Assembly: GCF_001194135.2 (NCBI RefSeq)
Contig: NC_069003.1
Span: 19,996,049 to 20,060,048, forward strand
Reading direction: 5' to 3'
Origin: Octopus bimaculoides
Lineage: Eukaryota
DNA: 64,000 bases
Part shown: positions 1,678 to 41,955 of the stretch, one piece after another
Position numbering within the stretch: the stretch's first letter is position 1
How the letters are laid out: each line of letters begins with the position of its first letter
Translations under genes and position numbers: made by a program
The notes under the pieces: generated by a model
Database searches by the model: none
The model's input: only the letters and a program-made list of their open reading frames with translations
Told to the model about the DNA's origin: nothing

Positions 1678-3669
1678 CTGTAGCAAATTGCTTAAAGCTT
1701 AAAATCATAATAATAATAAATATATAATTACATAAATAAATAACTGAAAGTACTTTACAAATTAAATAAAAACATGATCAAAGTCAAAAGACAAACACAG
1801 AAATCAAATCTTTAAAATTATCGCTATGCTAAAAAAAAAACAAAAAAAAATTATTTTAAAAAAAATGTAGCCTATCTAAATTAATCTGAAACATATGTTT
1901 TGGTTCATTTCACAAGATTCCTTACAGTGTTTTCACTTTTTTTTATATTTTATAAAGTTTTTAATACATTTTACAAGTTATTTTTTTTTTCTTTCATTTA
2001 TTGTCAAATTAAAGATCTTATTTACTTGTCATTGGGAACAAAAGTATATTCAGGTGAGAGATGGATGAAGATATGTACACACACACACAAACAAACAATC
2101 ATCACGCACACATCATCATCATTATTATCATAGTTTTAACATCCACTTTTCCATGCTTGCATGGGTCAGACAGAATTTGTTGAGCAGATTCTTTATGACT
2201 AGATGCTTTTCCTGTCATTAAACCGCACCTGTTTCCAGATTATGTAATACTTCCCCATGGCCAAACATGTTTCCACTGAATATTGGAAATGAAAGTCACC
2301 ACTTGTATGGCAGTGACACTCATTTACAACTATCACATAATGTCAAGGAAAGGAGATACAAAACACACACACACATACATGCGTTCATACGATAGGCTCA
2401 CAAAGCTTTTTTTTGGTCTCAAGCTATGGCTTAAGACACTTGCCCAAAGTTTTACAGTGGGACCAAACCTAGAATCATGTGGTTGGAAGCAAACTTTTTA
2501 CCACATTGCATGCCTGTACCCACTTTATGTATAATTATTATTTATATAATATTATAGTCTGACAGCTAATTAATGTTGATACTGAACGGTTTCATACCAG
2601 AATTAGAGAGAGAAATTTAGCAATCATTGGATATGGCTGAACAGAAAAGAATGGCCTGGGCTCTTTGCTATTGAAAATGTCACATCTAGTTTATGGGTCT
2701 GAGTTGTGAAAAACCACAACAAAATACATAGATGAAAGAACACAACTACAGGAAACAGAAGAGAAGAAAACTGGTTTTTAATTCCATTGGATTGGTATCT
2801 TTCAGTCAGATGGTGGGGAAGGAGAGTGAACTGCATGTTAGAATCCAGGCAGCAAAATTCCACCCCAGTTTTCTATTTGATTACAGGATAAGAAGGGTAA
2901 GGGTGAGGTAAAGAGGGTGAGACATGGATAAAGGTGGACAAGGGGACTGCCTGAATACACAACAATACATGAGGAAGAAACTCTGCTAATACTTAAATTC
3001 TTTTAGGAACTCTGATGATATTTCTTTTTCTGTGATTAATACTTTTCTTCCAGAGTCTTCTTGTCTTTCTCTTTTAGGTTTATCTTTTTTTAAAAATCTT
3101 CAAATGTATGGGCAAATAAGACAACATTTCCTTATACACAACTAAAACAGTCTATAAAATATTCATAACTATAATTGATTTTAACTATGACAGATATTTT
3201 CACAGGAAAGACGAAAATAATAATTGGAGTTGTTATTAATTTGTGTGTAAATTTAAACAACTTCCATATTTACCTTTCTTGCACTCATACACATCTAACA
3301 AACTATGACAAAATACAAAAGAGAAAAAAAGTGAAAATTTTGTGGAATGCCATCATATATCTTCCCTATTTTTGTTGAAATATTTCTTCCTCTGTCTTCA
3401 CAACAAAATAATATAGCCTAATTAATAAAGCCTGAATTGCTTCCTACTGATAAAATTGAAGTAAATCGAAATAGCTTTATATAAGTATTGAAGATTTAAT
3501 AGTTGAATATATATATAATAAGGACTACAGTTGAAACAAAAAGTAAAACAAAATAGAGAAGGTTCTTTCTCTATATCAGCTCATCATTATCTTTCCTCCA
3601 TAGGTATTTTTCACCTCACCTTTATTTGCCCTTGTATGGACAAATAAGACTTATAAAGGTTAAAAAAAT

Positions 3670-3890
3670 GTATGGACTATTGTCATCATATCTAGGCTAG
3701 TGCCTCTGCTGGTGCTCTTAGTCTTCTTGATGCAGTTCAAAAGCAAGTTTCAAACATTGCTGGTCCAGTTTTGGTAACCAAACTTCAGCCCTTGTCTATC
3801 ACCAAGATATTGCTTCTTTATGTTTTTCCCATAAATACTTTCATGGTTGTTGTTCAGCTGAACTTTCTTCCCTTCATTCTTCACCATTAA
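3670..3890 (+). mobile_element. CR1/L2-group LINE C-terminal fragment
   Basis: Frameshifted ASAGALSLLDAVQK...TKLQPL...KYFHGCCSAELSSL pattern. Confidence 0.65.
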
Positions 3891-4126
3891 TGTCCCCTTC
3901 TTGTATGAAATGTTTCTACTCTAGTACTTACTTCTCTCAAATTTCTGTCTCATTGAAATCTCTTCCTTATTTCCTTGGTTGATAATAATCCTAATTCTTT
4001 TATTCTTTTAAATCTTGTGTTGATCATCTTATAGTTTTTAGGACAGTTTCTCACTAGTTTTTCCCTTTTCTTCTGTAACTCCCCTCAAAAAACTAAGGCC
4101 CATTTTAAAACTGGTTACTTGCCACC

Positions 4127-4127
<1 letters not shown>

Positions 4128-4168
<41 letters not shown>

Positions 4169-4170
4169 AC

Positions 4171-4207
<37 letters not shown>
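4128..4207. repeat. (AC)n/(AT)n compound microsatellite; many others in the window (e.g. 7506, 15492, 15806, 23255, 25660, 26131, 27340, 29036, 59848)
   Basis: Direct inspection. Confidence 0.95.
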
Positions 4208-4600
4208 TATCATCATCGTTTAACGCCTGCTTTCCATGCTAGCATGGGTTGGACGATTTGACTGAGGACTGGCGAACCAGATGGCTGCACCAGGCTCCAA
4301 TCTGATCTGGCAGAGTTTCTACAGCTGGATGCCCTTTCTAACGCCAACCACTCCGAGAGAGTAGTGGGTGCTTTTACGTGCCACCGGCACAAGGGCCAGT
4401 CAGGTCGTACTGGCAACAGCCACGTTCAAGTGGTGTTTTTTATGTGCCACCTGCACAAGAGCCAGTCCAGCGGCCCTGGCAATGACCTTGCTCGAATGTT
4501 TTTTCACGTGCCACTGGCACAAGTGCCAGTAAGGTGATACTGGTAACGATCACGTTCGAATGGTGTTTTTTACGTGTCACCGGCATGGAAGCCACTCAGC
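4208..4600 (-). mobile_element. RTE 3' UTR copy (LINE end or non-autonomous derivative)
   Basis: High similarity to the reverse complement of 33700-33997. Related copies at 7336-7500, 19975-20200 and 43440-43765; shorter tail copies at about 2120, 9200, 26400, 28810, 32460, 38960, 46420, 49150 and 50110. Confidence 0.85.
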
Positions 4601-6262
4601 TGCTACATGTACATGCATTTGTTGGTACAAGTTATGTACCAATAAATTTACACAAAAACCTAGAAATACTCGATTTCATGGAGAAAGAAACTGACTTGGA
4701 TTCTCTAAATCCAATCTATTCATAGCACAGTGAAGATTTGTAAGACATTCCAAAAATTTTCCATCAGATTCTCATGTGAATAGACAACAAAACCACATAT
4801 TTACAAATGCCAGGAACTCTTAACTCAAAATGCCTTGTCACTTTATTAGCAACTGGCTTGAACTCTCTCAAGAAGAACTTAAATAAAACTCAAAGGAAAA
4901 ACATATATATTTGAAGATTAAATATAAAAAATTACTCCAGCACTTGAGCTTTGTGGTATACACTTGACAAACTGGATCTGCTATAAAAACAGTTCTCTAA
5001 TTCTACACTTTAGCAGTCCAGATCTACCAGCAGATAATATCAAAGATATTCCAATCCTGAGCATTCTGTCTTTTTTATTTTTTTATATATTGTCAATGTA
5101 ACTAAGAGCACATTATCAGTAATGTATGATTTGAAGAAAATTTGGTTGCTATTTCTGGCAGGTCAAGGAAATGCATAGTGGCTCTCTTATTGGCCCTATT
5201 AACTACGTATTTCAGTTAATTTTTAAAACAGCTAAGAATTTAGAGTAGGGTAGTTTATAAAATTTTTAAAAAATTTGACGTCATTAAGTTGGTGTTCAGA
5301 TCATAACTAAACATTTAGTTCTTAAACAAACTGTAATGGAAGGTTTTAATTTAAATACATGTTTTAAAATAGACAGTTGTGTATTGTATAATTCAAAATG
5401 GTCCCAGGTTGGTACCAATAGAATTTTAAGATATAAGATTTGTTGGACTTCATTATCCAAAATCTTCCTAATGCATCTGTGCATCAACTGTCTTAAATCA
5501 CATCTTAACATAGACAAGATATGATTTAAGATAGTTGATCAGCAGATGCATTATAGCATCAAATAAAATGCATTGCAATATTTGTTCCAGCTGTATGTGC
5601 TCTAAGTTCAAATCTCTCCAAGTCAACTTTGCTTTTCATCCTTTCAGGGTTGAAAAAATTCTGACTGATGGCCATAGTTTAGTTTAGAACATGATTAGAG
5701 AAAGATATACCCAAGGCTGGTTTTAGAGACAATTAGACAAACTTGTTCAAATTGGGCCCCATGCCAAGAGAGGGCCCTGCACACACACACACACCTGAGC
5801 AGAGGATGCTTTGATGAATTTTTAGAATATCACTGTAGCTAATGGTGGAGCCACAACCCTTCGATGTTTTTTGGCTAGAATTGGTGTACTACATGAAGCA
5901 TAAAACATTAATCTTCAGCTTTTGCAGAGTAAAGGGCCCCACTGACAATTCTCTAACTGGGCCCCACACTTCCTAGTGTGGATATACTTGATGTTTGTAG
6001 TAGATCAAGCAACTACCTAGCAGTTCCTGTTGATTTAGTTATCACATTATTGTAAACATATGGTACTTTGTCAAATATTGTTTTAGATCATCTTTTTTTC
6101 TGTTTTACATTCATCTCATCATTATCACCAAAATATGGCTGAGAACAAGATAAGACAAGACAAAGCAAAGATGAATATAATTCAATCTAAATGAGGTTGG
6201 CATAGAATTGGTTATTTAAAAGAGGTCAAATGGAAGAGAATCATAAGTTGTAGAAAACTCAC

Positions 6263-6292
6263 ATATGAAACATCAAAAAACAAAGAAATAAT
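6263..6292 (-). CDS. Candidate 30-nt exon (IISLFFDVSY)
   Basis: Acceptor TTTTTGTTTTTGCTTTAG, donor GTGAGT. Confidence 0.3.
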
Positions 6293-7502
6293 CTAAAGCA
6301 AAAACAAAAATGTAACACAAACAATGTTATAGTTATTATAAAGAAAGTATTGATTTAACATTTGCAATATTTTACTGCAAATGGAAATTAGCATAAATAC
6401 AGAAAAATCCAAATGAGACAAGTCTTTTTGCTGGACTTGTTGGTAACAAGTGTGTGTGTGTACATTTGGGGACTGTATGCATAAATGTGTGTATATGTAG
6501 ACAGCATGTGTGTGCATATGTTGATGGAGTGTGTGTGTAAATGTGAATTTATATTTGTCTACATGCAAACAAGCAATCATGTGTATGTCTCTGAGTACGC
6601 AAACAATATTCATTATGTAGCCATATGAAAGGAAAGAGATGTTTTGACAGACATCCTTTTCCTTAAAGCTATTAGTAATGTGATTTATGTAGATTCATGT
6701 GCAAGCAGTGCATGTTTCCACATACGTGTTAGTATGTATTTACATGAGAATATACATACACACTCATGTGCATATACAAATCTACATGCATACATGCGCG
6801 TGTGTGCACGCACGCACACACGCACACAGGGTAGGTCAAAAGTCATGCAATAAAACATTCGACATTGTTACTATTTGTTTTGTTTGTATATATACAAAAC
6901 ATAGTTTGCATGTTTGTGTGTGTGTGCACGCATGTTCCTTACGGATTTGAAAACTAAGTTGCCAATTTTGACATATGAGGTATCAAAAGATTCAGTAATC
7001 TTTTGGCTATCAAATAAAGTATGTTTTTTGCACAACAGCTATTTTTTTACTGCAAAACTAACCTCAAAAACGAGGTTGGGTCACACAATTTTGAGGTCTT
7101 TAGCTAAGGGAGGCAACTCTGCCTGAACAATCTTTATGTCTTAGATAAAGCATAATGAGATGTTTAAAATACATGGAGTTTTACCAGGGAGTGAAACTTT
7201 GAAGATATACTGCCAACTTTATTAGTATTGCAGCGTGGAAGGTGTTTATAAACCATTTAAAAAACACAAAAACCGTTAGATTCACTTCAACATTTAAATT
7301 TAATTTGCCAAAATATTTTCGTTGCTTTGAGACCGTAGTGTAGTGGGTGCTTTTACGTGTCACCGGCACGAAGGCCAGTCAGGCGGTACTGGCAACGGCC
7401 GCGCTCAAAATGGTGCACAGGAGCCAGTCCAGCGGCACTGGCAACGATCTCACTTGAATGTATTTACACGTGCCAGGAAGGCACTTGTGCCAGTGGCACA
7501 TG

Positions 7503-8170: not shown

Positions 8171-11100
8171 ACCATTTGTCAAAGCATATATATATTAGTT
8201 TCCAATTTTGGTACAAAGCCAACAATTTCAGGGGAGTAGTAAGATGATTATATTGACTCCAGTGCCCAACTAGTACTTACTCAGAACATAAAGTCAGAAG
8301 AAATGCAACTTAGCAATTTTTCCAGCACAGTAATGATTCTGCCAGCTTGCCAAAGCATATATATTAGAATATCGGTTTTAGTAGCATCCCTTAATTCTTT
8401 AAGTCCTAAGATTTATTCCACTCTTTCAGTTTTTACAAGATATTTTACAATTATTATTCCACAGTTCTTCTAAACTCACTTCTTAATGAGTTCTAAATAT
8501 TAATTTATTCATCCATTCTATATCTAACTCCAAAAGTGGCAGATCATTTTGCTTTTTTTTTGCTTTTTTAATACAACATTCACACATTAGATACTCAGTT
8601 GGAACATAATTGCCAAATAAAATTTAAACAATTATATATGAATAAACTGTTTATGTCCTTTAAGAATAATTACTTTACATTAGAAACATTTCTTTTAACA
8701 TTATTACTGCAATTTTGACATTTCTTTAAAACTTGCATATTCATAAACTAGAATTTGTTTTGGTTTATTATTTTTCTTTAAATTCAATATAGCTTTCTTA
8801 TATCTTTTTTTTTTTTTTTGTTTTTCTATTCTCTGCTAACATATGTTCAAATAATTCAGATAATTCAACTATCATCCTGGAAAGAGTTTTAGAAATTGTT
8901 AGAACATATTCCATACTGATGTGGGTTGGACAAGAACAAATGAGCCAGAGAACTACATTAAGCTCTTATGTCTACTTTGGCATGGTTTCTACAGCTGGAC
9001 ACTCTTCCTAATACCTACCACTTTACAAATTATATCGGGTGCTTATTCATGATGCTGACCAAATAACTTCGAAGATAAAAAAAAAGACTCCTCAGTTGAG
9101 TGATATTGTAGTGGAGACAGAAGTGGCTTTATGCCTGGTGTTGTTGCAAGGTGAAAGTATAATAGAGAGGCAGACAAAAGAGGTGCATGTGTGAGTGTGT
9201 GTCAAGTTTTCCATGCTTGCATGGATCAGACAGAATTTGTTGAAGTAGATTTTCTACAGACAGATGCCCTTCCTGTCACTAACTACCACCTGTTTCCCAA
9301 GAAGGTAACCTTTCCCCCATGACCAGACATGGTTTTGCAGAATATTGAAAATGAATGAAACTGCATATATGACAATGAAGCTCATTTGCTACTGTTATAC
9401 ATTGTCAAACCAAGAAGGCCACCCACAAATTGTGAAATAGTAGTGATATCTATTTTGATTTAGGGAAAAAATGCTTCACAAATCAAATGGCATACGTGTA
9501 ATACATTGGTGAAATTACTATTGCTTGTTTTTAATTCCCTAACCACAAACACAAACTATGCAGATGATATCACAAAAACACAGCTGTGATTCTTACACAG
9601 TCTAAGCACATTTAATCAGACTTGCAAAGCCAGTGAGGGAGACTCTGCATGTTCACACAACCAACAAGAAACAGCAAAATCTTCCCTCAAACTGAACCCT
9701 ACCATCATAATAAAAGAATACATTGTGAAATGGATGTGGTGGTCACTGCTGAAATTACTTTTTAGCATAGGTCACCAGCTAGCAAAAATTAGTACCTGTA
9801 ATTCAATACTTATTTTTTAAAGCCTGTTACTTACTGTATTAATCTCTTTTACTAAACCACTAATTTATGGGGGACACACAGACACAAAGGCATGCACATA
9901 TGACAGGCTTCTTTCAGCTTCCATCTACTAAATCCATTCATAAGGCTTTTACTGGTCTGAGGCTTTAGTGGAAAACACTTGCCCAAGGTGCCACATAGTG
10001 GGACTGAACCTACAACCATGTAGTTGAGAAGCAAGCTCCTTACCACACAGCTATGCTTGCACCTATATGTTTTCATTTTTTCTCTATAAAAAGATACAAT
10101 GTAATTGGAGAGTGATTTAGGGTTGTATTTCTAGTAAGTCATGTGACCACACAGAGGCTCTATCTATTACTCATTGAGACTTCGTATATGCAATGTTGGT
10201 GAATGTTTAATATATATTTCTTTCTTACCATAACAATCTTGTAATGTTACTGTATTATGTGATATCAGTAAAACACCTCCAGAACAGAACACATTTATTA
10301 TATATGTACAGTTTAATTAATAAATGCCATCTTAAATCCTGCAGGAGTTGCCAATACATAAATCTTCAGCCATGTAATTTAATATATTCCACATCAACAC
10401 CAGCTTAACTGATTTGTAAGATAAATCAGATAGAACTAGTTTTCACATATATTCTAAATTTCAACAACCTCTCTCTCTTTATATATCTATATAATGTGTT
10501 ACATTAGTTTTCTCATTAATATACCCAATACTAATTTCAACATTTGCTTACCATGTTCTGCTTATTGTCTGTCAAGTTAAATGCTAACCTTTTTACTTAT
10601 TTATAAAGCAGTAGCATAGCTCATGTGTGTCCAACAAGTTAGACAATTTGAAGTGTATTCATAAGCAAAAGTCTTTCAGACAAGAATTAGGCAAAGTTGT
10701 TCAGTATTGAATAGAATACCATTTGGTATTTGTTCAGACTCTCTTTGCTCTGAGTTCAAACCCTGCCTAAGTCAACAATGCTATTCAATCTTTCAGAGTT
10801 GATAAAAAAAAAAAAAAAGAATAGTACCATTCCAGGAAGGCAAATTGGCAGGGATCTAAGAATATCACATCAAATGCTTCGCAATATTTGTTCCAACTCT
10901 TTGCATTCTGAGTTCAAATCCTGCCATGAGTGGTTGACTTAATCTGTCAGCTGCTTTAGCAATGCTACCTGGCTCTTGGGCAGGTATCTTTAGTAAAGTC
11001 CACTCTGTTGCAAGCATTTGGACCAGTCTAGTGGTTGTTAGGCTTTCAACAGAAGTCATCAACTCTGACGTGAGAACAGTATATGTTTACACCCAGAAAA

Positions 11101-11349
11101 GAGCACATTTGAAGCACTGTACTAGATAAGCCAGACTAACCTGTCACCACCCACCTCAACACAATAGCCCATTCCATTTCCCAATTATCAGTGGGCTGCA
11201 TATTCACTTATCATAGATTAACACATTCAAGGGAACAGAAGGAACATTTCATATTCAAACTTGAAACCATGGTATTGATGGGTTTAAATTAGTTTTCCTT
11301 CTACTACTACACCTCTTAGTTCACTAATCCCATTCTTATCTTTCAGCTC

Positions 11350-11414
11350 TGTCGTGCATGGGAAATGAAAAGAGGTTCACCTACCTTCCTCTCTCATCTG
11401 CACATATCTAGTAG
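11350..11414 (-). repeat. Truncated 3' LTR (~65 bp retained)
   Basis: Matches 13446-13505 with about 6 substitutions and a 5-bp indel, then joins directly to integrase sequence, so the PPT and integrase core are deleted. Confidence 0.8.
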
Positions 11415-12632
11415 AGATATGTCCCCTGCCAGTAATGTGTTACACCCACTGCTAATGGTCTCCAGTTGTGCTCTACTGAAACGTTTCCCTGCTCGGGCAC
11501 ACCAGGAGCAGGGTCGATGTATTGACACCTGTCACAGTTCCCGATCACCTTCTGGATGCTCCGTCTGGTAATGTCAGCATCAATTCTCCTGGCAACTGCA
11601 CACCGTATGCAGCCAGCCACCCTGTGATTGAGTAGTGACCTACTAACATCCCGCACATTGAGAACAGTTCTCACCGGCTGATGTTGGTACCCAGCTCCAG
11701 GATCTCATTCCTCCTACGAAACACCAACTTGCCTGTTTTGTCTCTCTGAATCTTAAGCCCCAGTGCAGCTCCTCCAGCCATTGGTTCCAGTGGCTTTGCA
11801 ATCAACCCAAATTTCTTCAAATGTCTCACAACCTCTGTGGCAGGCACTACGGTCTCATCCACTAGGATGTCATCTACATAGGAACTGGTGACCCTTCTTA
11901 TCCTATCCACCTTTCCCACGATACATGACACAATACATGGCCATTCATCTCCCGAAAGTCCAGTACTGGTCTAACTTTGCCTTTTGCTGGCTGCACCACT
12001 GCCATTTGAGGTAGCACTCTGCTCGCCACCTCCTCTTTCCATGGGATAGGGACACATTCCTTAATCCACTTCTCTACCTCTTCTTCAGACTTGCCCCTGG
12101 CTTTCCCCTTCAGGGTATGCTGGTAGCAGCTCACCTTGTTATTCAGCATCGGGGGTCCCTCTTTCCAGCGCCACTCTATTGTCCATCGCTGACCATCGAA
12201 AGCCACCCGAAAATTCCTGTCTTCAATGGTGTAAGCAGTACAGCTCCTCGCAGGGCTCTGCTCCTGCTCACATTCCTGACTTACGGCATACAATACCTCC
12301 ACAACACCAAACAAAACCACGTTTCCTCCAACACGGACACCTCTAAGGCAGTCAATTGTGTCCATCCCCATTACCATGTCGATCCTGTCTACCATGTGGT
12401 TGATCACAATCAACCAAAGCCTTAGCACTGTGCCTCACACCACTATATCAACATCACTGCTACCCTTGCATTCGATTTCGCTGCTATCAACTGCCCGAAC
12501 GCTACTCGTCCCCTTCCATTTCTTTGTCACCTTCAGGGTCACGAGAGTCGTCATGCAACCCATGTCCACGAGGGCCTTGAATGTGCTTCCTCTGACCACG
12601 ACCTCAACTACAGGCAGTGACTTCACCAACAC
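11412..12632 (-). pseudogene. pol remnant (protease, partial RT, integrase zinc finger)
   Basis: Protease-like ALVDMGC; RT KVRPVLDFREMN and SSYVDDILV; integrase CDRCQYIDPAP. No RNase H or integrase core is recognisable. Confidence 0.8.
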
Positions 12633-12639
12633 CTCTACT

Positions 12640-13400
12640 CGTTCGTGGGGGAAGTTTGAGAGGCAAAAACTTCTCCATGGCCTTTTCCTTGGTTACAATT
12701 TCGGCCAATATGCCCAGTCTTTTGCACTGGTAGCAAACCGGTCCAGGCACCACAAGGTCCCTCACCATGTGCGGTCCTTGGCATTTAAAACACCATCCTG
12801 TGAACAGCTGCCGTTGTTCCACAGCAGGCCTCTTTTTGTCCTTCACCAGCCATCGTGCAGATTTGTGGGCTTCTGCAGCCGCCATCACCACTGCCTTCTG
12901 CCTGGTGTTTTGTGTCAACATGCGGGCTTGAACAATGGGCTCGCTCATCACCATTTTGTTGCCACCTGGCATCTGTTGTAGTTGCACCAACAAATCATCG
13001 GGAAAGCCGTTCACAAAAGTCAGTCATGCTATCTTCTCAAGTCCCTCACTGGTAAGACCACACAACACATCAGCCTGCATACCTCCACAGCATATTCATC
13101 AACCTGTTCCCCTCTCCATCTGATTGTTCCTAGCTTAGCCAAAGTGGCATACTCTCCATCTGGGTAAGCTTCTCTCAAATGCTGCTCGATCTTCGCTGCA
13201 CTCAGCTGATCTTCTTCATCCATTTCGAGGTACAGTGCCAGCGCACTCCCCTCCAAATACAGGGCCATGAGGCTCACTACATCTTCGATGCCTTGTAGCC
13301 TGGCCACAACTTTGACCTTTCAAATCCAGGCTACTACATCACCTTCGCCATAGAAAGGTCTGATGACATCACTGCCGATCCTTATCTTCGCTGCCATCAT
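12640..13400 (-). pseudogene. gag remnant
   Basis: MMAAKIRIGSDVIRPFYGEGDVVAWI*KVKVVARLQGIEDVVSLMALYLEGSALALYLEM..., with zinc-knuckle-like CFKCQGPH and CYQC; stops and frameshifts present. Confidence 0.75.
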
Positions 13401-13433
13401 ATATCAAGGGGACAACGATATCTGTATACAATT

Positions 13434-13445
13434 GCCGAAATAGCT
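13434..13445 (-). promoter_or_regulatory. Atypical primer-binding site complementary to tRNA-Phe(GAA) nt 1-12
   Basis: Plus strand GCCGAAATAGCT directly abuts the LTR. This equals the first 12 nt of metazoan tRNA-Phe(GAA), GCCGAAATAGCTCAG..., as recalled. Confidence 0.7.
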
Positions 13446-13737
13446 TGTCGTGCATGGGAAAAGAGGTTTACCTATCTTCCTCTCTCGTCTTCACCTGTCT
13501 AGTAGTAGTCACTCCGGCGATCCCACCTACCCCCATCACCCAGTAAAAGCAGCTACTATCTCACCAACCCGAGAGCGAATTCCCTCACACCCATTTGCAA
13601 TGCTTCGGCCAGCCAAAAGAGGATAACCCTGTTCTGTCCCCCCAGCACTTCCCTTCTCATGTGTCTTCTTCCAGTCAGTCCCTTGACCATTGACATCATG
13701 GCCCTCTTCTTCCAGCTCATCCCACAAACTCACAACA
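13446..13737 (-). repeat. 5' LTR (292 bp)
   Basis: TG...CA ends with a 7-bp imperfect terminal inverted repeat (TGTCGTG/CACAACA); its first ~60 bp recur at 11350. Confidence 0.8.
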
Positions 13738-15489
13738 GTTCTCTCTCCTACTACTTCCTATTTCCATATAAAGCTCACACTGTCTTGTGCTCACATTGTC
13801 CCCCATCAGATGCATCCAGTTTCTCAAACATAGATCATGTCATACTTTGCTTCTTTCCTTTATTTCTCTCCTGTCATCTTTACTCTAATGATGGACTGTC
13901 TAAAGCATTGGATACTCCACTTCCCACAGCAATTCACTGTACTTTTTCCAGATAATGGTGTTCAATGCTGAGGTGCCTAATACAGAAATACAAATGATGA
14001 AGAAAGAAATAAACCAACTATTCTATCAAATAACCAGAGCTCACATTATTGATGAAGTGAATTATTATGTGAAATATGTACCATTATTTTCACAACAATG
14101 AGTTTGATGATACACAAAATTTAATACATCACTGTCTTAAATTCCTGCTTACAATTGATTTTTATCATTTATTTATAAAGTCAATAAAATAAGAATCAGT
14201 GAAACATTGAAGTTGATTCAGTTGATTGAACACTCATACCCTTACAATAACAGCTTTATACTAAGCAATGGAAATGCTTATTTTCACCTGACCTGCTGAA
14301 AATTGCAGCCAGATCTCCCTCAAATCACAACCCTATCATCTTAAATAAAAATGGATACATTCAACAAGAGAGCCTCTGATATCCTATATCAGAGAAAAGT
14401 TGGGATAGGTGTCAACAGTATCAGGAATAATGTTTTGCAGTATTCATTCCACCCTTCTGCATGCAGAGTTCAAATCCTGCAATAGTTAACTATACCTTCC
14501 ATTTTTTTCAGGGTTAATTAAGTGCTAACATTGGGGTTAATTCATCTCCCCAACTCTTTCTTGCTTCCTCCACCCCAACACAGTCTCCCCCCACTTCTCT
14601 TTCTGGGAGAAATCAGTTATGTCAGACTTGGAGAGGAATGAGCTCTGCAAGGTTTAAAAGTACAAACCAATTTGTTTTACCTTCTCCAACAACTAAGTCG
14701 ATTCCATGTCAATGAGGGTGATCATCCAACCTGCAAGAAACAGCAGTTAAATTCTCTCCTCCCCACTCCAACCAAACCCTTCTACCTCTGATAATAATAA
14801 AAGGAAATAATGAACAAAGGTCATCCCTGGTATAAAAAAAAAAAACCGATAGTGTAAACAAGAATATCTTTGCTCATTGATCAGATCAATCAGATCAGCT
14901 TTCATAGTAAACAAGAAGAGCCCATTTGATTTTCTACTCATGCTGAATTAACATTATCTCGACTTCCTTTAATAGCTGAATAGATGATAGCTCATATAAT
15001 TATGTATAACTTCAAGACAGTATAAAAACTAAATCATAAATTTTGGAAAGAACTCTTACTATTTATTTAAAAGTTATTTCATTTATACTATGTAAAACAG
15101 TTCTGTGATGTTACCATAACAAGAAAAAATAATCAAAAATACTTTTTAGAAGATATTATATGTAGGAAATATAGCAGCTGAAACTAATCAGAAAATAGAC
15201 TGATTGGAATTAGTGAAGAAAGAGACATAAAAGACAAGATTAATCATTTGATAAATTCTTAGTATTCCAGTGCATGAAAATGAGAAATTTATCAAGAAGT
15301 ATAATTGTTATATGGTATGAGAGGAGAGAACTGGTTATAAATAAAAAATAAAATAAGCTGTTTGTGTTGATGTTATTTATGTACAAAAATAAAACAAATT
15401 ACTAAGTTCAAATACAATTTATTTTTAGCTTTAGATTGTAAGAATGTAGGACAGATTATTGAATCAAGTTTCATTTATGCTAAGTCAAA

Positions 15490-17839: not shown

Positions 17840-18590
17840 GTCCACATGAACCAAGAAGACTAGTGGCTGTCTACATGAGCCAAAAAAAAAAGAGGTCAGT
17901 CGCAGTCTACATGAGTCAAGGAGGCCAGTGGCTGTCTACATGAGTCAAAGAGGCCAGTGGCTGTCTACATGAATAAATCAAGGAGGCCAGCGGCTGTCTA
18001 CATGAGTCAAGGAGGCCAGTGGCTGTCTACATGAATGAGTCAAGGAGGCCAGTGGCTGTCTACATGAATCAAGGAGGCCAGTGGCTGTCTACATGAGTCA
18101 AGGAGGTCAGTGGCTGTCTACATGAATCAAGGAGGCCAGTGGCTGTCTACATGAGCAAAAAAATGAGGTCAGTGGCTGTCTACATGAGTCAAGGAGGCCA
18201 GTGGCTGTCTACATGAGTCAAAGAGGCCAGTGGCTGTCTACATGAGTCAAAGAGGCCAGTGGCTGTCTACATGAATGAATCAAGGAGGCCAGTGGCAGTC
18301 TACATGAGTCAAGGAGGCCAGTGGCTGTCTACGAGTCAAGGAGGCCAGTGGCTGTCTACATGAGTCAAGGAGGCCAGTGGCTGTCTACATGGGTCAAGGA
18401 GGCCAGTGGCTGTCTACATGCGTCAGGGAGGCCAGTGACTGTCTACATGAGTCAAGGAGGCCAGTGGCTGTCTACATGAGTCAAGGAGGTCAGTGGCTGT
18501 CTATGTGAGTCAAACAGGTCTGTGGTTATTTACATGAGCCAAGGGAGATAGTGGTCTACATGGATTTAGGAGGCTACTTGTTATCTACAT
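17840..18590. repeat. Minisatellite, 29-bp unit GAGGCCAGTGGCTGTCTACATGAGTCAAG, about 24 copies
   Basis: Head-to-tail units with +4 (ATGA) and -2 variants; degenerate at both edges. Confidence 0.95.
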
Positions 18591-19650: not shown

Positions 19651-22519
19651 GAGCTACATGTAAGACTTGATCCAGTAGATCTAAGATCAATGAAATTCAA
19701 TTCATGATCATCCTGTCTTTTTCTAAAGCATTATCCAATGTGTCATCTCTTTTCAAAACAACAGCATGTAATTTGAGGGAGGTGTACTCATTAAATGTTT
19801 CAATAGATTGCACAACTGAGTTTGGGTCTTATACCTAAAGGGTTGTCTGGACAGTAGACCACAAAAAAGAAAAGAAAACTATACTAGTGTTCAAATGTTT
19901 CACATATTTTCAATGAATCAAGCAAAAAGAGCTGAGGAAATAAACTGCTGGTGTGTATGTAGCAGGCCCTCATCATCATCGTCGTTTAACGTTCACTTTC
20001 CATGCTAGCATGGGTTGGACGATTTGACTGAGGACTGGTGAAACCAGATGGCTACACCAGGCTCCAATCTGATTTGGCAGAGTTTCTACAGCTGGATGCC
20101 CTTCCTAATGCCAACCACTCAGAGAGTGTAGTGGGTGCTTTTTACGTGCTACCGGCACGAAGGCCAGTCAGGCGGTACTGGCAACAGCCACGCTCAAAAT
20201 GGTCAGTTCCTGTAAAAGTTGTAGAGGTGCCATCATGACATGTAGCACATTTTGGACAGTTTAAAAACTTGTAAAGCCCACCTCTCTTCAGATCAAACCA
20301 CAGCCAATTTCTTTCAGAGAATGTGGTGGGGGTGGACAGAAAAAAATTAACTCCGGTATTAAACCCTGAAAGAATGAAAAGCATAAATGGCCCCAGTAGG
20401 ATTTTAAATCTCAGTGTAGAAGGCTGGAATACCACAAAACATGTTCTCTAACGCTCTAATGACTCTGCCACCTCATCCAAATTGTCACCTTAATTAGCAA
20501 GTTAAAGAATTTAAAAGTGGAATAAATTAGTTTGTTTTTATTTTACTTTTGTTTTCTCTTTTTTTTTTTCTTGACGCTCTAATGATTCTGCCAGCTCACC
20601 ACTCTTACTAAAAGTAACAGAAGAAATCAGTTAACGAATCACATTTTCATTTTGTTGCTCTCTTAAAAGTTAGTCATAATCAATCTTAATCTTTTGACCA
20701 AACTATAAGCAACACTTTTTGGTTGGTATGTCCTGAAATATTCACAATGAATCTACAAACACTAACTAGGAAGAAAATACAATGACAAACTAGAAACCAC
20801 AAACCATCAATATCATTAATCCCAGATGAGCAAATCCTATTCTTTGACTGACATTACTAATGTTTTATATAAAGGTAATCGATCAAATGATAGATGATGA
20901 TGATGACACTAAAGCAAGAAACCATTCTTAGCTTGAAAATAAAATAAAATAAGTAAACAACTCCTATTTTCCTTTAATTCAATTTTTGCAACTAAAAACA
21001 GTTTATCTGTACTTTACATATTTTTCTAAAAGCAAATGAGAATTCTGATCTGACTTCGCTTTGCATTTACACTAATGTTTCAATTCCCAGACTGTCAATG
21101 CAAACACAAGATTAGCGAATTTGTTAAAAAGCACCACAGTGTTTCACACAAAGGAATCAATTAGTTTTACGTGTCAGTTTGAGAGGTTTAAGGACACTGG
21201 AATATGTCCAAACTATGAAAGCTCAATACATTTAATACAAGCTAAATAATAGATACCAGAATTAATACTAAATACCATTTATGTGTACATTGTATACACA
21301 CAGATAGACAGACATCCACACATACATATTGTGAGACAAACATACAACCACACACATACACTACTAACATAAATACAGAGAGACATGAACACACAGACTC
21401 ACAAACATAGCCACACATACACATTTATTGATTATGGTAGCTGGATATTTACATAAATAATTAAAAACCAATTTTTGGCCATGAAATACTACAAATATTG
21501 ACTTCATCTTAGACAATATATAACTGTATATCAAAAGTTGTGAACATAAGAGAGATAAAACATTCATTAAAACCAAAATGGATTGAAAATTTATCAAGAT
21601 ATTGTTACCAGCCCATCCTCTGTCAAACCAAGTCACAAATCAACAATAGGTCCTTTTCTTAATAGAAGCAACATCAATAACTTCATTAATCCACAAGCTA
21701 ATTAATAGGGCCTCTACATACGACCTTTTAGAAACAGCAGACAAATCACTCTTAAATCATATTCAATGGTTTTTAGAAAGGAAAAAAGACATATAAAATA
21801 ATGGTATTCAAGGTACCCCTTCAAGAGTTGGAATGGTCATAGCTGGAATGCTTTTGATCATGAATCTCTATGACCAGGTCTGATCCAAGACTGAATATCA
21901 CCACTAATAACAACAAGCTCGTTAATCCCCAAGCGCTGTACTGGGTTTCATATGATCAGAGATTAGTGTAAAAGAACCACAACCATCATACTCTACCACA
22001 GGAGTCTCCCACCACCCAGCCACAGACCAGTACTGGGTCATGGATCATTTGTGTCAGGCAACACAAAAGGAATAAATCTTTTGAGATGTATTATATATAT
22101 TACAATAGAATAATTACATTTGCATTGTATATGTAATGATTAAATTATATATTATGCACTTTATTGTGTTTTGTTATGCACTTGAGTCCCCAGTTCATGG
22201 GAAAATTGTCTTGCAGGAAACCAGTCTGGAGATTGCTGTTCCAACAGACAAGTCACTTGCCTCCATGGTGCCTCCTAACACCACCACTAGAGCAAAAAAA
22301 AAACAACATTCCCAGGCTGTTATACTGCATCTCTTATAATAAATTACCGAGGGTGTTTTAAATACACAGTACGATCCTCAACAAGAAGGAAGGCACAAAA
22401 AACAAAGTAGTGAACGAGTGTGTGATTCACACCTATATAGCCACTTGCCCTGCTATAAATAGCAGCCAAATAACCTGAAATAACACCCTAACAGGGTTGA
22501 AAATGAGGACATATTAGAT

Positions 22520-22778
22520 CACTGGTTCTCAACTGAGGTTCATATGGTCCTTGGGGTTCCATAAAAGATTTTGTTGTTAAAATTTATCTCCAATAAATTG
22601 GTTATACTTCTACAATACACAAAATATTTGAATAATTTTTTTTTATACAATTCCTAATATTTAATTATAAAAATATAACAGGAATCTTTTTAAGGAATGG
22701 CTAGGAGGGCTGATCTGAGTAAAATAGGAATCAAAGGGGTCTATAGGTGAGAAGAAAAAAATGGTTGGGAAAAAACTG
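22520..22778. mobile_element. hAT (Charlie-like) MITE
   Basis: Ends CACTGGTTCTCAAC and ...GGTTGGGAAAAAACTG; 8-bp TSD TATTAGAT/CATTAGAT; sister copy at 28420-28664. Confidence 0.75.
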
Positions 22779-23297: not shown

Positions 23298-24197
23298 GGC
23301 TCTTTTTTCAGTTTCCATCTACCAAATCCACTCACAAGGTTTTGGTTGGCCCAAGGCTATAGTAGAAGACACTTGCCCAAGGTGCCATGCAGTGGAATGA
23401 ACCTGGAACCATGTGGTCGGGAAGCAAGCTTCTTACCACACAGCTGTACCTGTGCCTAATATTTCTAATCATTACATGGTTCAAAAGCAGCCAAATTAAT
23501 AAGTCCCTTTCCCACAGAATTTCCTCACATGTATCAGAAGAATCTGCAATAACCAGCTTGTCTGAAGTCTCCTTCAGCAAGGATATGGGAAATACAACTA
23601 TTATTCAAAAGAACAATGCTTGAAACAGACTTTCAACACTTTTTTATGCTAATTCAAGAGAAGCAATGATAAAGCTTCTTCAAATATGAGGTTTTTAGTA
23701 ATTTGCTACATAGCAGAACACACATTGATATATCTACACTTCCTATTAGGTATCAAGGAGGGACAGGACCTTTTGTCAGGCTCATGTCAATTCATTCTCA
23801 GGTATTACCTATGGTTGTAGGAAGAAGTTCTTCTTGCTGACATCCAGTGTCATCTATTAACTGATCGACACACCTCTTTGCAAGTTGACCAATGTAATTT
23901 CAACCACAGGAGACCCCCTAATCATCCACATGAGAGACCCTAGTCTCAACAACATATCTGTAGAATTTAATTTAATCAACTGTAAACCCCATCAAAATGT
24001 GTAGCTTTTTGATATGTTAGAAATCATACTGACAGAATCACTACAGTATTTGACAAAATACCTTCGAAATATCAAAGCCATTTTTTGTATATTTTTGTTT
24101 TACTTTCATTTAATTTCAAAAATAAGGAAAGTATATTAAAATAATTTCCTCATTATTAGTCCATAAATTTGCATGAAAAGGTTTAATTTAGATCACT

Positions 24198-28419: not shown

Positions 28420-28664
28420 CAGTGGTTCTCAACTGGAGTCCATATGGCCCTTGGGGGTTCACATAGGATTTTGTTAAAATTTATATGCAATAAATTGGTT
28501 ATACTTCAACAATACACAGAATATTTGAACTTTTTTTTTTTACACAATACCTATAATATCTCATTAAGAAAATACAATATGATTTTAAAAAATATGAATG
28601 GCTATCAGAGCCCACCTGAATGAAACAAGGGTCCATAGGTAAGAAAAATGGTTGAGAACCACTG
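28420..28664. mobile_element. hAT (Charlie-like) MITE, second copy
   Basis: Perfect 14-bp TIR CAGTGGTTCTCAAC/GTTGAGAACCACTG; interior similar to 22520-22778; TSD unclear. Confidence 0.75.
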
Positions 28665-29412: not shown

Positions 29413-30599
29413 CTGTGTATACATAAAATTGAAATATACAGCAGTTTGCAATACACGCACACACAGAACAAGCTTCTCAGATTCTGAATAGCAAATCTAT
29501 TCACAAGGCTTTGATTGGCCTGGGACTATAGTAGAAGACACAAGCCCAAGGTGGTACACCATGGGACTGAACTCAAAACCATGTGGTTGAGAAGTAAACT
29601 TGTTACTACACAGTTGGGTTTGTGCCTTCTTACATAAAATTATCATAAAAGGCTTGCATTTAACTAAAAAACATTTTTTAAATGGGAACTTTTGTATTAT
29701 AAAACTAGGAAAAAGCTCAGGCAGGTTCATATCAAAAGAGACACCAAGACAATATTGCCAAGTCAACAAGATCTATAGTAATTCCAAGTTAGAATTATTA
29801 TTAAAAAGAGAATATTGATTTCATTTCTTTACTTCTAAAAGACTGAAAGTTATAGACAAGTTCTTTTACCACACCATCTCTGGTTTCCTTTCAGACAAGC
29901 AAAATAAATCAGACGAGAAAAATAAAACGTAATATAAAATGAGGTTATGTAATTTTGTTGTTTATTGATTATCTGTAATATTGCAATGAAAAGAGGTAAT
30001 AAAAGTGATGCACTTAAGACAATTGCAGTTCAAGCACTGTCATCAATGCTACTATTTTAATATACAAGAAATCTTTTCACTTGTTATCAAGTAGAACATT
30101 TACTATAAACTAACAAGTGCCATTGATAGCCTTATATGAAAATGCTTAATGAACTAAGAGGGGATGACCAAAATGACAAAAATCTAATAATGGTGATGAT
30201 GGTGGTGGAGGTGGAGGTGGTGGTGGTGACAGTGATGAAGATGTGAACTATTTAGAGAAAAAAGTAGGTGGTTGAATAAGAGTGAAAATAAGAAAGGTGT
30301 AATTAAGTAAAAAGACTAATCTGGAGAAGAGGCTGTTGTTGTCATTTAACCCTAGGTTGGCTCTGATCAAGAGGATATATGATGAAAGGCATTCCAACCA
30401 AGACTATCCTGTCTTTTTAAAAGTATCAAAGAATACAAAGTTCATTCCAGAAGGTGTAAAACTGTTTTTAGAAAAGCAATCATAACTATCCTAGATTATT
30501 GTGATTTTATTATATCAATACTATACGTCTAATAAGCTGACTTGCCAACTTTTGTTATTTCAAATTGAAGGAAACAGCTGCAAGAGTACTTTGAACACA

Positions 30600-40539: not shown

Positions 40540-41955
40540 TTGATTCGAAACCAAAACTGGCATGACAGCCTTTCTATACAAGACGATGACCTCAAACGAA
40601 GTCATTTTATGTCAACCATACAAGATATATGCACCAAATATGTGCCAGAAATAAAGGCCAGCAAACATGCCAATAGAATTCCCAGAGACAGGAAAATGCT
40701 TATGAGACACAGAACAAAGATCTCAAACCAGTTGAATAGAGAACTGGAGGATAGGAAAAGGGCTAAATTAAAACTAACACTTAGAAATAAAAAACAAAAT
40801 TAAACTCTCTCATGAAAAGGAAAGAAGGAGAAGAGAGCAGTAGAAAGCATAAAAACAAACCCTAAGGCTTTCTATAGATTTGCAAAGGAGACTACCACAG
40901 CACAGTACAAAATAGGACCCCTATTCCTGCCTAATGGCTCACTGACTGCGGATCCCAAATGGATAAGTGAAGTGCTCAGTGCGCAATTCAACAGTCTTTT
41001 CAGTTCTCCTCTGAGTCACATGCAGATAAAGAACCCAGCTGATTTCTTTGACAATATCACTCAGCAGAAAAAGACTGCATCCATTACATACATTGACATT
41101 GAAAAGAAAGATTTAATAGCGGCCATAAACGAAATGAGCTCAAATTCGGCAATTGGCCCTGATGGTTTCCCAGCTGTCCTCCTAAAGTCATGTAAACAAG
41201 AATTAGCAGGACCACTCTTCCAGAGTTTCCTTGCAAGTGGTAAACGTCCCAAAAAGCTGAAGGAAGGCATCATATGTCCTATCCATAAAGGTGGAAGCAG
41301 AGCAGAGGCTGGGAACTACAGGCCCATCTCTCTGACTTCACATATTAGCAAAGTCATGGAACGAACTGTCAGAAGGAGGCTGATTGCATTCCTAGAAGAA
41401 AATGGCTTGCTAAATGAGACCCAGCATGGTTTCCGTCCAGGTAGAAGCTGCCTCACGCAGCTCTTGTAGCATTATGACTGGGTCCTGAAGCAGCTACTTG
41501 ACCATTCAAATGTTGATGTGGTATGTCACAAGCTGCAAAACCTTGGCATAGCTGATAAATTAGGAGAGTGGCTACATGACTTCCTGAATGGTAGAAGTCA
41601 TACAATTGCAGCCAATGGAGAATTATCTAGGGAAATGCAAATATTGAGCGGTGTTCCAAAAGGAACTGTCCTGGGGCCACTACTGTTCATAGTAGCCCTT
41701 CTGGACATGCCCACGGTCACTCAGACAATAAAGAATCTTGATGATATCATAAGCCTGCAGAATGACCTAAATGCAATATACAAGTGGGCAGAGCAAAATA
41801 ATATGCGGTTCAATGCTAAAAAATTTCAAGTTTTGCGCTACAAGGGCACAAGTACCCAATAACTGGCATACACAGGACCTGGAGGTACTGCAATCCCAGA
41901 ACCACAAACAGTGAGAACCTGAGCATCAGCATGTGTAGTGATGCATCATTTCACA
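40540..41955 (+). mobile_element. CR1/L2-group LINE reverse transcriptase fragment
   Basis: GPDGFP, PIHKGG, NYRPISLTSHISKVMER, QHGFRPGRSCLTQLL, SGVPKGTVLGPLLF; stops and internal deletions. Confidence 0.9.

Follow-up and report, generated by a model that had tools for sequence, protein, structure and literature searches.

The window analyzed here is a stretch of 64,000 nucleotides (nt) from the genome of Octopus bimaculoides (contig NC_069003.1, positions 19,996,049 to 20,060,048), which contains the remains of a long terminal repeat (LTR) retrotransposon on its minus strand. Directly after the 5' LTR of this element lies a 12-mer, AGCTATTTCGGC, that is probably the minus-strand primer-binding site of a compact (~4.0–4.3 kb) lineage of metazoan LTR retrotransposons and, judging from its complementarity, would pair with a host tRNA over its first 12 nt. 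The partner is most likely to be tRNA-Phe(GAA) in the window and in a related element of Hydra vulgaris.

On the minus strand, the 5' LTR ends in ...CATGCACGACA at 13452–13446 (CACGACA) and is followed by the 12-mer at 13445–13434, with no spacer and no TGG; the junction reads ...CCTCTTTTCCCATGCACGACA / AGCTATTTCGGC / AATTGTATAC.... A 65-nt stub of the 3' LTR (11414–11350), 87% identical to the end of the 5' LTR, terminates in the same ...CATGCACGACA, and an unrelated flank (GAGCTGAAAG) begins directly beyond it. The LTR boundary in the window is at 13446, where the initial annotation of this stretch had placed it, and this position is upheld both by the 3' LTR stub and by the 5-bp duplications that flank four related elements (see below). 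An LTR extended into AGCT, considered since the 3' flank in the window reads GAGCT, was rejected because the four relatives with clean duplications end at CA. No paralog was found in the 64-kb window, in which the 12-mer and the LTR end each occur once.

The 12-mer is the exact reverse complement (12/12) of GCCGAAATAGCT, nt 1–12 of tRNA-Phe(GAA). The 5' sequence of this tRNA is given by a published human primer (GCCGAAATAGCTCAGTTGGGAG; PMC10505166) and by a Drosophila 5' probe (GCTCTCCCAACTGAGCTATTTCGGC; PMC7038984), and the two are identical across the first 22 nt printed in both, which bears out the complementarity to the metazoan tRNA that the initial annotation had pointed out, including its stop at nt 1. 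The complementarity is bounded by tRNA nt 1 on one side and by the edge of the LTR on the other. In reverse complement the site ends in ...AGCT, and not in ...CCA. By simple arithmetic, with ~50 tRNA species to choose from, a 5' end that matches 12/12 at a single fixed position is expected by chance at ~3e-6. The only papers found in the literature to contain AGCTATTTCGGC use it as a probe for tRNA-Phe.

The following parts of the element were identified in the window:

13446–13771, minus strand: 5' LTR, ~326 bp; firm at its 3' end (13446), with a tentative 5' start (13771) that is taken from a possible 5-bp duplication (GAGCT)
13434–13445, minus strand: putative minus-strand primer-binding site AGCTATTTCGGC, complementary to tRNA-Phe(GAA) nt 1–12
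13401–13433, minus strand: untranslated leader of 33 nt, from the 12-mer to the gag ATG (13400–13398); not conserved, 1–60 nt in relatives
12700–13400, minus strand: gag remnant, with a capsid-like N-terminal part and a CCHC zinc-knuckle region; one stop and one frameshift
11913–12617, minus strand: pol fragment, protease and N-terminal part of the reverse transcriptase (RT) (residues 1–239 of a relative; tblastn), with weak RVP/Asp_protease matches
11614–11934, minus strand: pol fragment, YVDD region of the RT to the thumb (residues 308–414 of the relative); residues 240–307 are deleted
11414–11596, minus strand: pol fragment, zinc-binding region of the integrase (residues 637–697 of the relative); RNase H and the remaining integrase are deleted
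11350–11414, minus strand: 3' LTR stub, last 65 nt only, joined straight to the integrase fragment by an internal deletion
11345–11349, minus strand: possible target-site duplication GAGCT (partner at 13772–13776), weak evidence as a 5-mer within a search space of ~500 nt

The gag remnant aligns with the gag of an intact relative (L002; tblastn) at 13382–13071, with 58% identity, and in a different frame at 13065–12700. The length of ~326 bp for the 5' LTR falls within the range of its relatives (202–489 bp). The RT core, RNase H, most of the integrase, the polypurine tract and most of the 3' LTR have been lost, and the window copy is a dead, old, internally deleted relic of 2.4 kb in which the 12-mer is intact. 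On such a single degraded element, the match to tRNA-Phe might be put down to coincidence, or the 12-mer might be an inert fossil such as a captured antisense scrap of a tRNA gene. We consider this extremely improbable, given the low chance expectation and the retention of the block in 16 elements, from cnidarians to decapods and with recent insertions among them.

These relatives were identified on the basis of their proteins. A 176-aa piece of pol from the window yielded 509 homologues at E<=0.001 (HMMER), and a profile search 811 full-length pol proteins at E<=1e-30, together with 297 gag proteins. Most of the proteins of the family derive from marine and other metagenomes; the named hosts are Hydra vulgaris, Petrolisthes manimaculis, Macrobrachium rosenbergii and Penaeus vannamei. 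A metagenome scan with a second gag alignment gave 4 loci only, and a scan of viral contigs with gag gave none. The comparison below is of 16 distinct related elements (17 with the window), whose loci are numbered L001 and onward.

In 16 of 16 relatives the block AGCTAT[C/T]NNGG[C/T] directly follows the LTR-terminal CA (TA in one element). Its information content is 2 bits at positions 1–6 and 10–11 and low at positions 8–9, and falls to a background of 0.1–0.7 bit from position 13 on. In four intact copies the end of the LTR is set independently by 5-bp duplications (ATTAC, CATAT, GAACC, TAAAC), and in each of these the 12-mer begins right after CA. The LTR pairs of the relatives are 96–100% identical, with TGT...ACA/TCA ends. 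Since the Hydra copy and one Petrolisthes copy, whose LTR pairs are 100% identical, have the site, the 12-mer is a feature of recently active elements. The block is followed by the gag ATG after as little as 1 nt in Hydra and 3 nt in Macrobrachium and Penaeus, and between LTR and gag a TGG-type site is absent from all 16 elements. Given these short leaders and the lack of a TGG-type site, the block is the only positional candidate for a minus-strand primer-binding site.

The variable middle bases of the block fall into five discrete types, distributed as follows:

AGCTATTTCGGC: the window; Hydra vulgaris L027 and L025 (same family, 98.5% identity)
AGCTATTTTGGC: L024; the window type with one CpG-to-TpG change
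AGCTATCTAGGC or ...GGT: Tara plankton contigs L002–L005, L026, Macrobrachium, Penaeus and two Petrolisthes elements
AGCTATCCCGGC: L001 and L006
AGCTATCACGGC: L007 and L370/371
AGCTATCGCGGC or ...GGT: L008, L009 and L369

Read as its complement, the conserved frame of the block (GCC-NNN-A-UA-GCU) has the layout of a tRNA, with the acceptor strand at 1–7, followed by U8 and A9 and by the first D-stem positions at 10–12, and its variation falls in acceptor positions 4–6. The energy predicted for the 12-bp RNA duplex is -18.7 to -23.5 kcal/mol.

In the named hosts, the site types track the host and not the phylogeny of the elements. The identical 12-mer (TTCGGC type) is found in the window and in a Hydra element at just 25% gag identity. 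The CTAGGC type occurs in three decapod species, in three clades that are 36–46% identical to one another, and also in both deep Petrolisthes clades. Within the clade closest to the window (50–83% identical) there are three site types. This distribution is the strongest argument that the partner is supplied by the host. Primer sites of retroviruses are known to switch tRNA likewise.

The distribution also bears on whether the 12-mer serves another role, as a packaging or dimerization signal, as translation start context or as a binding site for integrase or Gag, with priming taking place elsewhere or otherwise. The block lies 1–60 nt from the gag start codon, and it contains the short palindromes AGCT and CTAG. 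However, its position abutting the CA of the LTR is that required of a minus-strand primer site, the short leaders hold no alternative site, and the elements contain no pairing partner for it. A structural signal should moreover vary with the element tree, and not occur as five types across clades at 25–45% gag identity. We therefore regard a role other than priming as improbable.

A pairing partner within the element itself was considered as well. In self-priming of the Tf1/sushi type, the transcript folds back so that its first 11–12 nt pair with the site, where RNase H cuts them, and the geometry and length of the present site (abutting the LTR, ~11–12 nt) are those of Tf1. The best partner in the window LTR, GCCGGAGTGACT at 13518, pairs at 8 of 12 positions by Watson-Crick rules, or 11 of 12 when G-U is allowed, but 8/12 is at chance level for an LTR of ~450 nt (by arithmetic). 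In five intact elements the best LTR match was 7–8/12, which was equalled or exceeded in 26–98% of shuffles, and the best match across the entire element was 8–9/12, equalled or exceeded in 143–200 of 200 shuffles. The complement of the variable heptamer is absent from the intact elements, and identical sites are found on elements with unrelated LTRs. Self-priming of the Tf1 type, which we consider very improbable, and any other intramolecular partner were rejected on the ground that these matches are no better than those of shuffled sequences; the partner would thus have to act in trans.

For the site types other than that of the window, tRNA genes with matching 5' ends were found in the IMG/VR collection (ARAGORN calls). 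With all four of the other variants, the sequence extended by CAG forms the beginning of one or more tRNA-Phe(GAA) genes in this collection. A eukaryote-type tRNA-Phe(GAA) beginning GCCTAGATAGCTCAGTTGGGAGAGC is present on contig IMGVR_UViG_3300046655_000646 (L023, 2329–2403, minus strand). Its first 25 nt equal those of the fly and human tRNA-Phe except at nt 4 and 6 (GCCTAGA...), and it would pair perfectly with the decapod-type site, as the CTAGGC sequence would call for a tRNA starting GCCTAGATAGCT. The L023 gene sits in a small tRNA cluster on a 134-kb 'viral' contig. The sequence GCCTAGATAGCTCAG belongs to tRNA-Phe in 11 of 11 phage and bacterial tRNAs, and the remaining types are mixed; in the IMG/VR collection, the 15-mer of the metazoan tRNA-Phe starts only Thr and Met tRNAs. 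Because these 5' ends occur in several isotypes (Phe, Thr, Val, Ile, Met), the isotype is not readable from the 12-mer. Phage and bacterial tRNAs are used here for one point only, namely that by sequence all five variants are genuine tRNA 5' ends. Full-text literature searches for the four other 5' sequences gave nothing useful.

Several observations count against tRNA-Phe, or a tRNA 5' end in general, as the partner. The canonical tRNA-Phe complement is carried by only 3 of the 16 elements. The non-Phe types have two internal mismatches with canonical tRNA-Phe, with a duplex energy of -10.4 kcal/mol for the decapod type. Since the fly and human tRNAs start GCCGAAA, the decapod GCCTAGA needs a diverged tRNA-Phe or another tRNA. 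In phages and bacteria, tRNAs for Thr, Val, Ile and Met likewise begin with these 5' 15-mers. ARAGORN found no tRNA gene in the window or in any eukaryotic element locus. The window copy, being old and broken, is by itself uninformative on function. Finally, we know of no nuclease that cuts a tRNA after nt 12, inside the D stem.

Some of these observations would fit priming by another host RNA, which could be another tRNA isotype, a tRNA-like short interspersed element (SINE) or RNA polymerase III transcript, or an RNA with a natural 3' end ...AUAGCU. Four of the five site types do not match the fly and human tRNA-Phe, the isotypes sharing these 15-mers are several, and a natural 3' end ...AUAGCU would spare a cleavage step. 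On the other hand, the conserved GCC...A-UA-GCU fits the acceptor strand, U8-A9 and D-stem start of a tRNA, and the 12/12 match of the TTCGGC type to tRNA-Phe in two very distant hosts would not be explained by a lineage-specific SINE. To our knowledge there is no abundant RNA with the 3' end ...AUAGCU. We consider priming by another host RNA rather unlikely.

With the tRNA 5' end as the preferred partner, the geometry of the duplex places tRNA nt 12 opposite the first base of the site, adjoining U5. The 3'-OH must then arise after nt 12, because tRNA nt 13–15 (CAG) cannot pair with the LTR end ...ACA. A possible course of events is that the nucleocapsid part of Gag unwinds the acceptor and D stems, so that tRNA nt 1–12 could anneal to the site. 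The tRNA would then be cut after nt 12, at the end of the duplex; the likeliest agent would be the element's own RNase H, as in Tf1. The cut would yield a 12-nt RNA with a free 3'-OH adjoining U5, which the reverse transcriptase could extend into U5-R. Plus-strand strong-stop synthesis would in turn copy the 12-nt primer and run off its 5' end, and the 12-nt copy would supply 12 bp of homology for the second strand transfer. Such a run-off at the 5' end of a 12-nt primer would account for a conserved block of exactly 12 nt. Nucleotides 1–12 of eukaryotic tRNA-Phe are modified only by m2G10, which is no block to copying by reverse transcriptase. Common 5' tRNA fragments end at nt 14–16 or later, which makes a pre-made fragment a less likely source of the primer. 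As the acceptor stems of host tRNAs diverge, the site type would be expected to switch.

The wider proposal is that a widespread animal lineage of elements (in cnidarians, decapods, marine plankton and metagenome hosts) primes from nt 12 of a host tRNA that is cut in the D stem by the element's RNase H once nt 1–12 have annealed; judged from the sequences, we hold the chances of this to be about even. Priming by a tRNA 5' end had been suggested by the initial annotation, and it is upheld in part. The three checks that had been set out there and were run, on the sequence adjoining the LTR in relatives, on the LTR boundary and on self-priming, came out in its favor, with the block next to the LTR in all relatives, a TGG-type site in none and no better partner for the 12-mer in the element's own LTR or transcript, and the host-tracking site types add to this. 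The low number of elements with a canonical tRNA-Phe complement does not, and priming itself and the cut after nt 12 are what we infer.

Intact copies of the family are compact, measuring 3967–4343 bp from LTR to LTR, and encode a gag of ~250 aa, which contains zinc knuckles, together with a pol of ~950 aa whose domains are ordered as protease (PR), RT, RNase H (RH) and integrase (IN). Pfam matches in the relatives include RVP, RVT_1, RNase_H/RVT_3, Integrase_H2C2, rve and zf-CCHC, and polypurine tracts ...ATCAGGGGGGAG or ATCAAGGGG precede their 3' LTRs. With its LTRs, duplications, gag, pol domains and polypurine tract, the family is an LTR retrotransposon by general features, of which the window has fragments only. 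The initial annotation had referred to Ty3/Gypsy elements. The order PR-RT-RH-IN, with RNase H straight after the RT thumb, was found as in that group (Pfam and AlphaFold2 (AF2) model), but this order is not diagnostic of Ty3/Gypsy because BEL/Pao has it as well. No match at E<=1 was obtained to the Gypsy models RT_RNaseH or RT_RNaseH_2, Retrotrans_gag, GPY/F or chromodomain (Pfam), and inspection of the integrase C-termini by eye revealed no GPY/F-like motif. Likewise, there was no match at E<=1 to the BEL/Pao models Peptidase_A17, DUF1758, DUF1759 and DUF5641, nor, even at E<=1, to Copia-specific Pfam models, RVT_2 included. The name Ty3/Gypsy is thus acceptable for the family only in the loose sense of domain order, the Gypsy-specific models having all remained without a match.

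The AF2 model of one pol protein has a mean predicted local distance difference test (pLDDT) score of 74, and of ~90 through RT and RNase H. In this model a three-helix thumb (Pfam DUF7047, residues 393–450; helices 394–451) runs directly into the RNase H strand from residue 456, with no connection or tether domain in between. An assignment to the dual-RNase-H type, that of Odin or the retroviruses, is therefore excluded for the family. Odin (a lokiretrovirus) is similar in being a gag-pol element without env that occurs in cnidarians, but it has a tether domain and a second RNase H (PMC9040795), and membership in Odin was rejected on the absence of the tether in the model. Odin has also been reported only in sea anemones, at 1–6 copies (PMC9040795), whereas the present family is abundant in decapods, Hydra and plankton. 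Troyka, with CG...CG ends and 3-bp duplications, was rejected because the family has TG...CA ends and 5-bp duplications. Among solved structures, retroviral integrases and the RT of murine leukemia virus gave the best matches in sequence, and the PR-RT of foamy virus and of HIV the best matches in fold; this ranking partly mirrors the content of the PDB.

Some further observations were made on the related loci. In L003, L004 and L005 (contigs from Tara and other marine metagenomes) the element is assembled in permuted order, with the end of pol, one LTR and the start of gag, as expected of tandem copies, of one-LTR circles or of assembly collapse across LTRs. An identical gag protein was present in four independent metagenome samples. 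A 102-aa open reading frame (ORF) within the LTR (L002, 260–568) was called in all four plankton contigs; it is without a Pfam match and possibly spurious. The related element of L001 is internally deleted and has its 3' LTR only as the first 56 nt, and immediately upstream of it lies a Ty1/copia-type element (3116–6458; Retrotran_gag_2, rve, RVT_2).

Among known systems, the closest in design is Tf1 of Schizosaccharomyces pombe, in which, as Levin reportedly described in 1995 and 1996, an 11-nt site abuts the LTR and RNase H cuts at the end of an RNA-RNA duplex, after nt 11. In both cases a short site (11 versus 12 nt) without TGG abuts the 5' LTR. Its partner is an RNA 5' end, the terminus of which determines how long the site is, and a cut at the end of the duplex is needed for a 3'-OH. 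Unlike Tf1, the elements described here have no complement in their LTRs or elsewhere, and their site types track hosts, which argues for a reaction in trans on a host tRNA; the family is also without a chromodomain and not detectably a chromovirus.

The copia element is said to be primed by a 5' fragment of tRNA-iMet (initiator methionine), according to Kikuchi et al. in 1986. In copia, Ty5 and Tca2 the primer is a half-tRNA (tRNA-iMet or tRNA-Arg) cut in the anticodon arm, and the site pairs with approximately nt 25–39 of a ~39-nt fragment. As in these elements, the primer proposed here would be a cleaved 5' piece of a host tRNA and not its CCA end, but the pairing involves nt 1–12, cleavage would take place within the D stem and would leave a primer of just 12 nt. 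The 12-mer does not correspond to an anticodon-arm site of tRNA-iMet, as compared by eye with the sequence of that tRNA, and with its PR-RT-RH-IN order and no RVT_2 match the family is not Ty1/copia. Retroviruses, Ty3/Gypsy and BEL/Pao elements share with the mode proposed here the use of a host tRNA, a site adjoining U5 and the switching of site type between hosts and lineages. Canonical priming by the tRNA 3' end differs in that the opposite end of the tRNA is used, at a site of 8–18 nt starting with TGG (here 12 nt), and in that no cleavage step is needed.

Neither the Odin paper (PMC9040795) nor the Troyka papers contain a discussion of primer sites, and the pipeline of a 2026 survey of metazoan elements sought primer sites as tRNA 3' ends only (PMC13524379). 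No published primer site complementary to a tRNA 5' end was found in the literature covered; subscription journals and Repbase Reports lay outside this coverage, and an earlier description is possible.

The remainder of the window contains several other repeats. Four copies of a repeat sharing ...GAGTTCAAATCCTGCC... (5552–5621, 10700–10769, 10858–10927 and 14414–14483), which resembles the T-arm/B-box part of a tRNA-derived SINE, are present, one of them ~1 kb upstream of the element and two just past its 3' end. A minisatellite at 17892–18544 consists of ~22 copies of a 29-nt unit, GAGGCCAGTGGCTGTCTACATGAGTCAAG, with 86% matches and a higher-order period of 91 nt. On the plus strand, a 165-aa ORF (40972–41469) contains the start of a reverse transcriptase domain of the non-LTR type, that of long interspersed elements (RVT_1, E 4e-8). 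Unclassified dispersed repeats, 69–94% identical, were found at 9908–10001, 23302–23395 and 29471–29564, at 4275–4375 and 20042–20142, and at 22574–22677 and 28471–28574. Runs of N (assembly gaps) at approximately 32.6–33.2, 39.3–40.3, 57.1–57.8 and 62.5–63.2 kb are flanked by (TA)n and (CA)n microsatellites. The Rfam scan of the window gave only matches to microRNA models, all below threshold and on low-complexity DNA such as (TA)n/(CA)n.

In textbook accounts, an LTR element is primed by the 3' end of a tRNA, by a tRNA half that results from a cut in the anticodon arm, or by its own 5' end. If the reading proposed here is true, it would add a fourth primer mode to these three sources. Among the ways in which a tRNA serves as primer it would be the third, besides the use of the 3' CCA end and that of the anticodon-arm half, and it would amount to a trans version of the self-priming of Tf1. 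It would also call for a new RNA cleavage activity, be it that of an RNase H which attacks an RNA-RNA duplex in trans or that of a host D-stem nuclease. In that case, 5' tRNA fragments of the host would naturally inhibit these elements or compete with them, and would have a plausible role in transposon control, in parallel to the known role of 3' fragments. For the family itself, current annotation tools, which search for complements of tRNA 3' ends only, would record no primer site in these abundant, very compact elements and may discard them, while a motif as simple as CA followed by AGCTATYNNGGY would find them.

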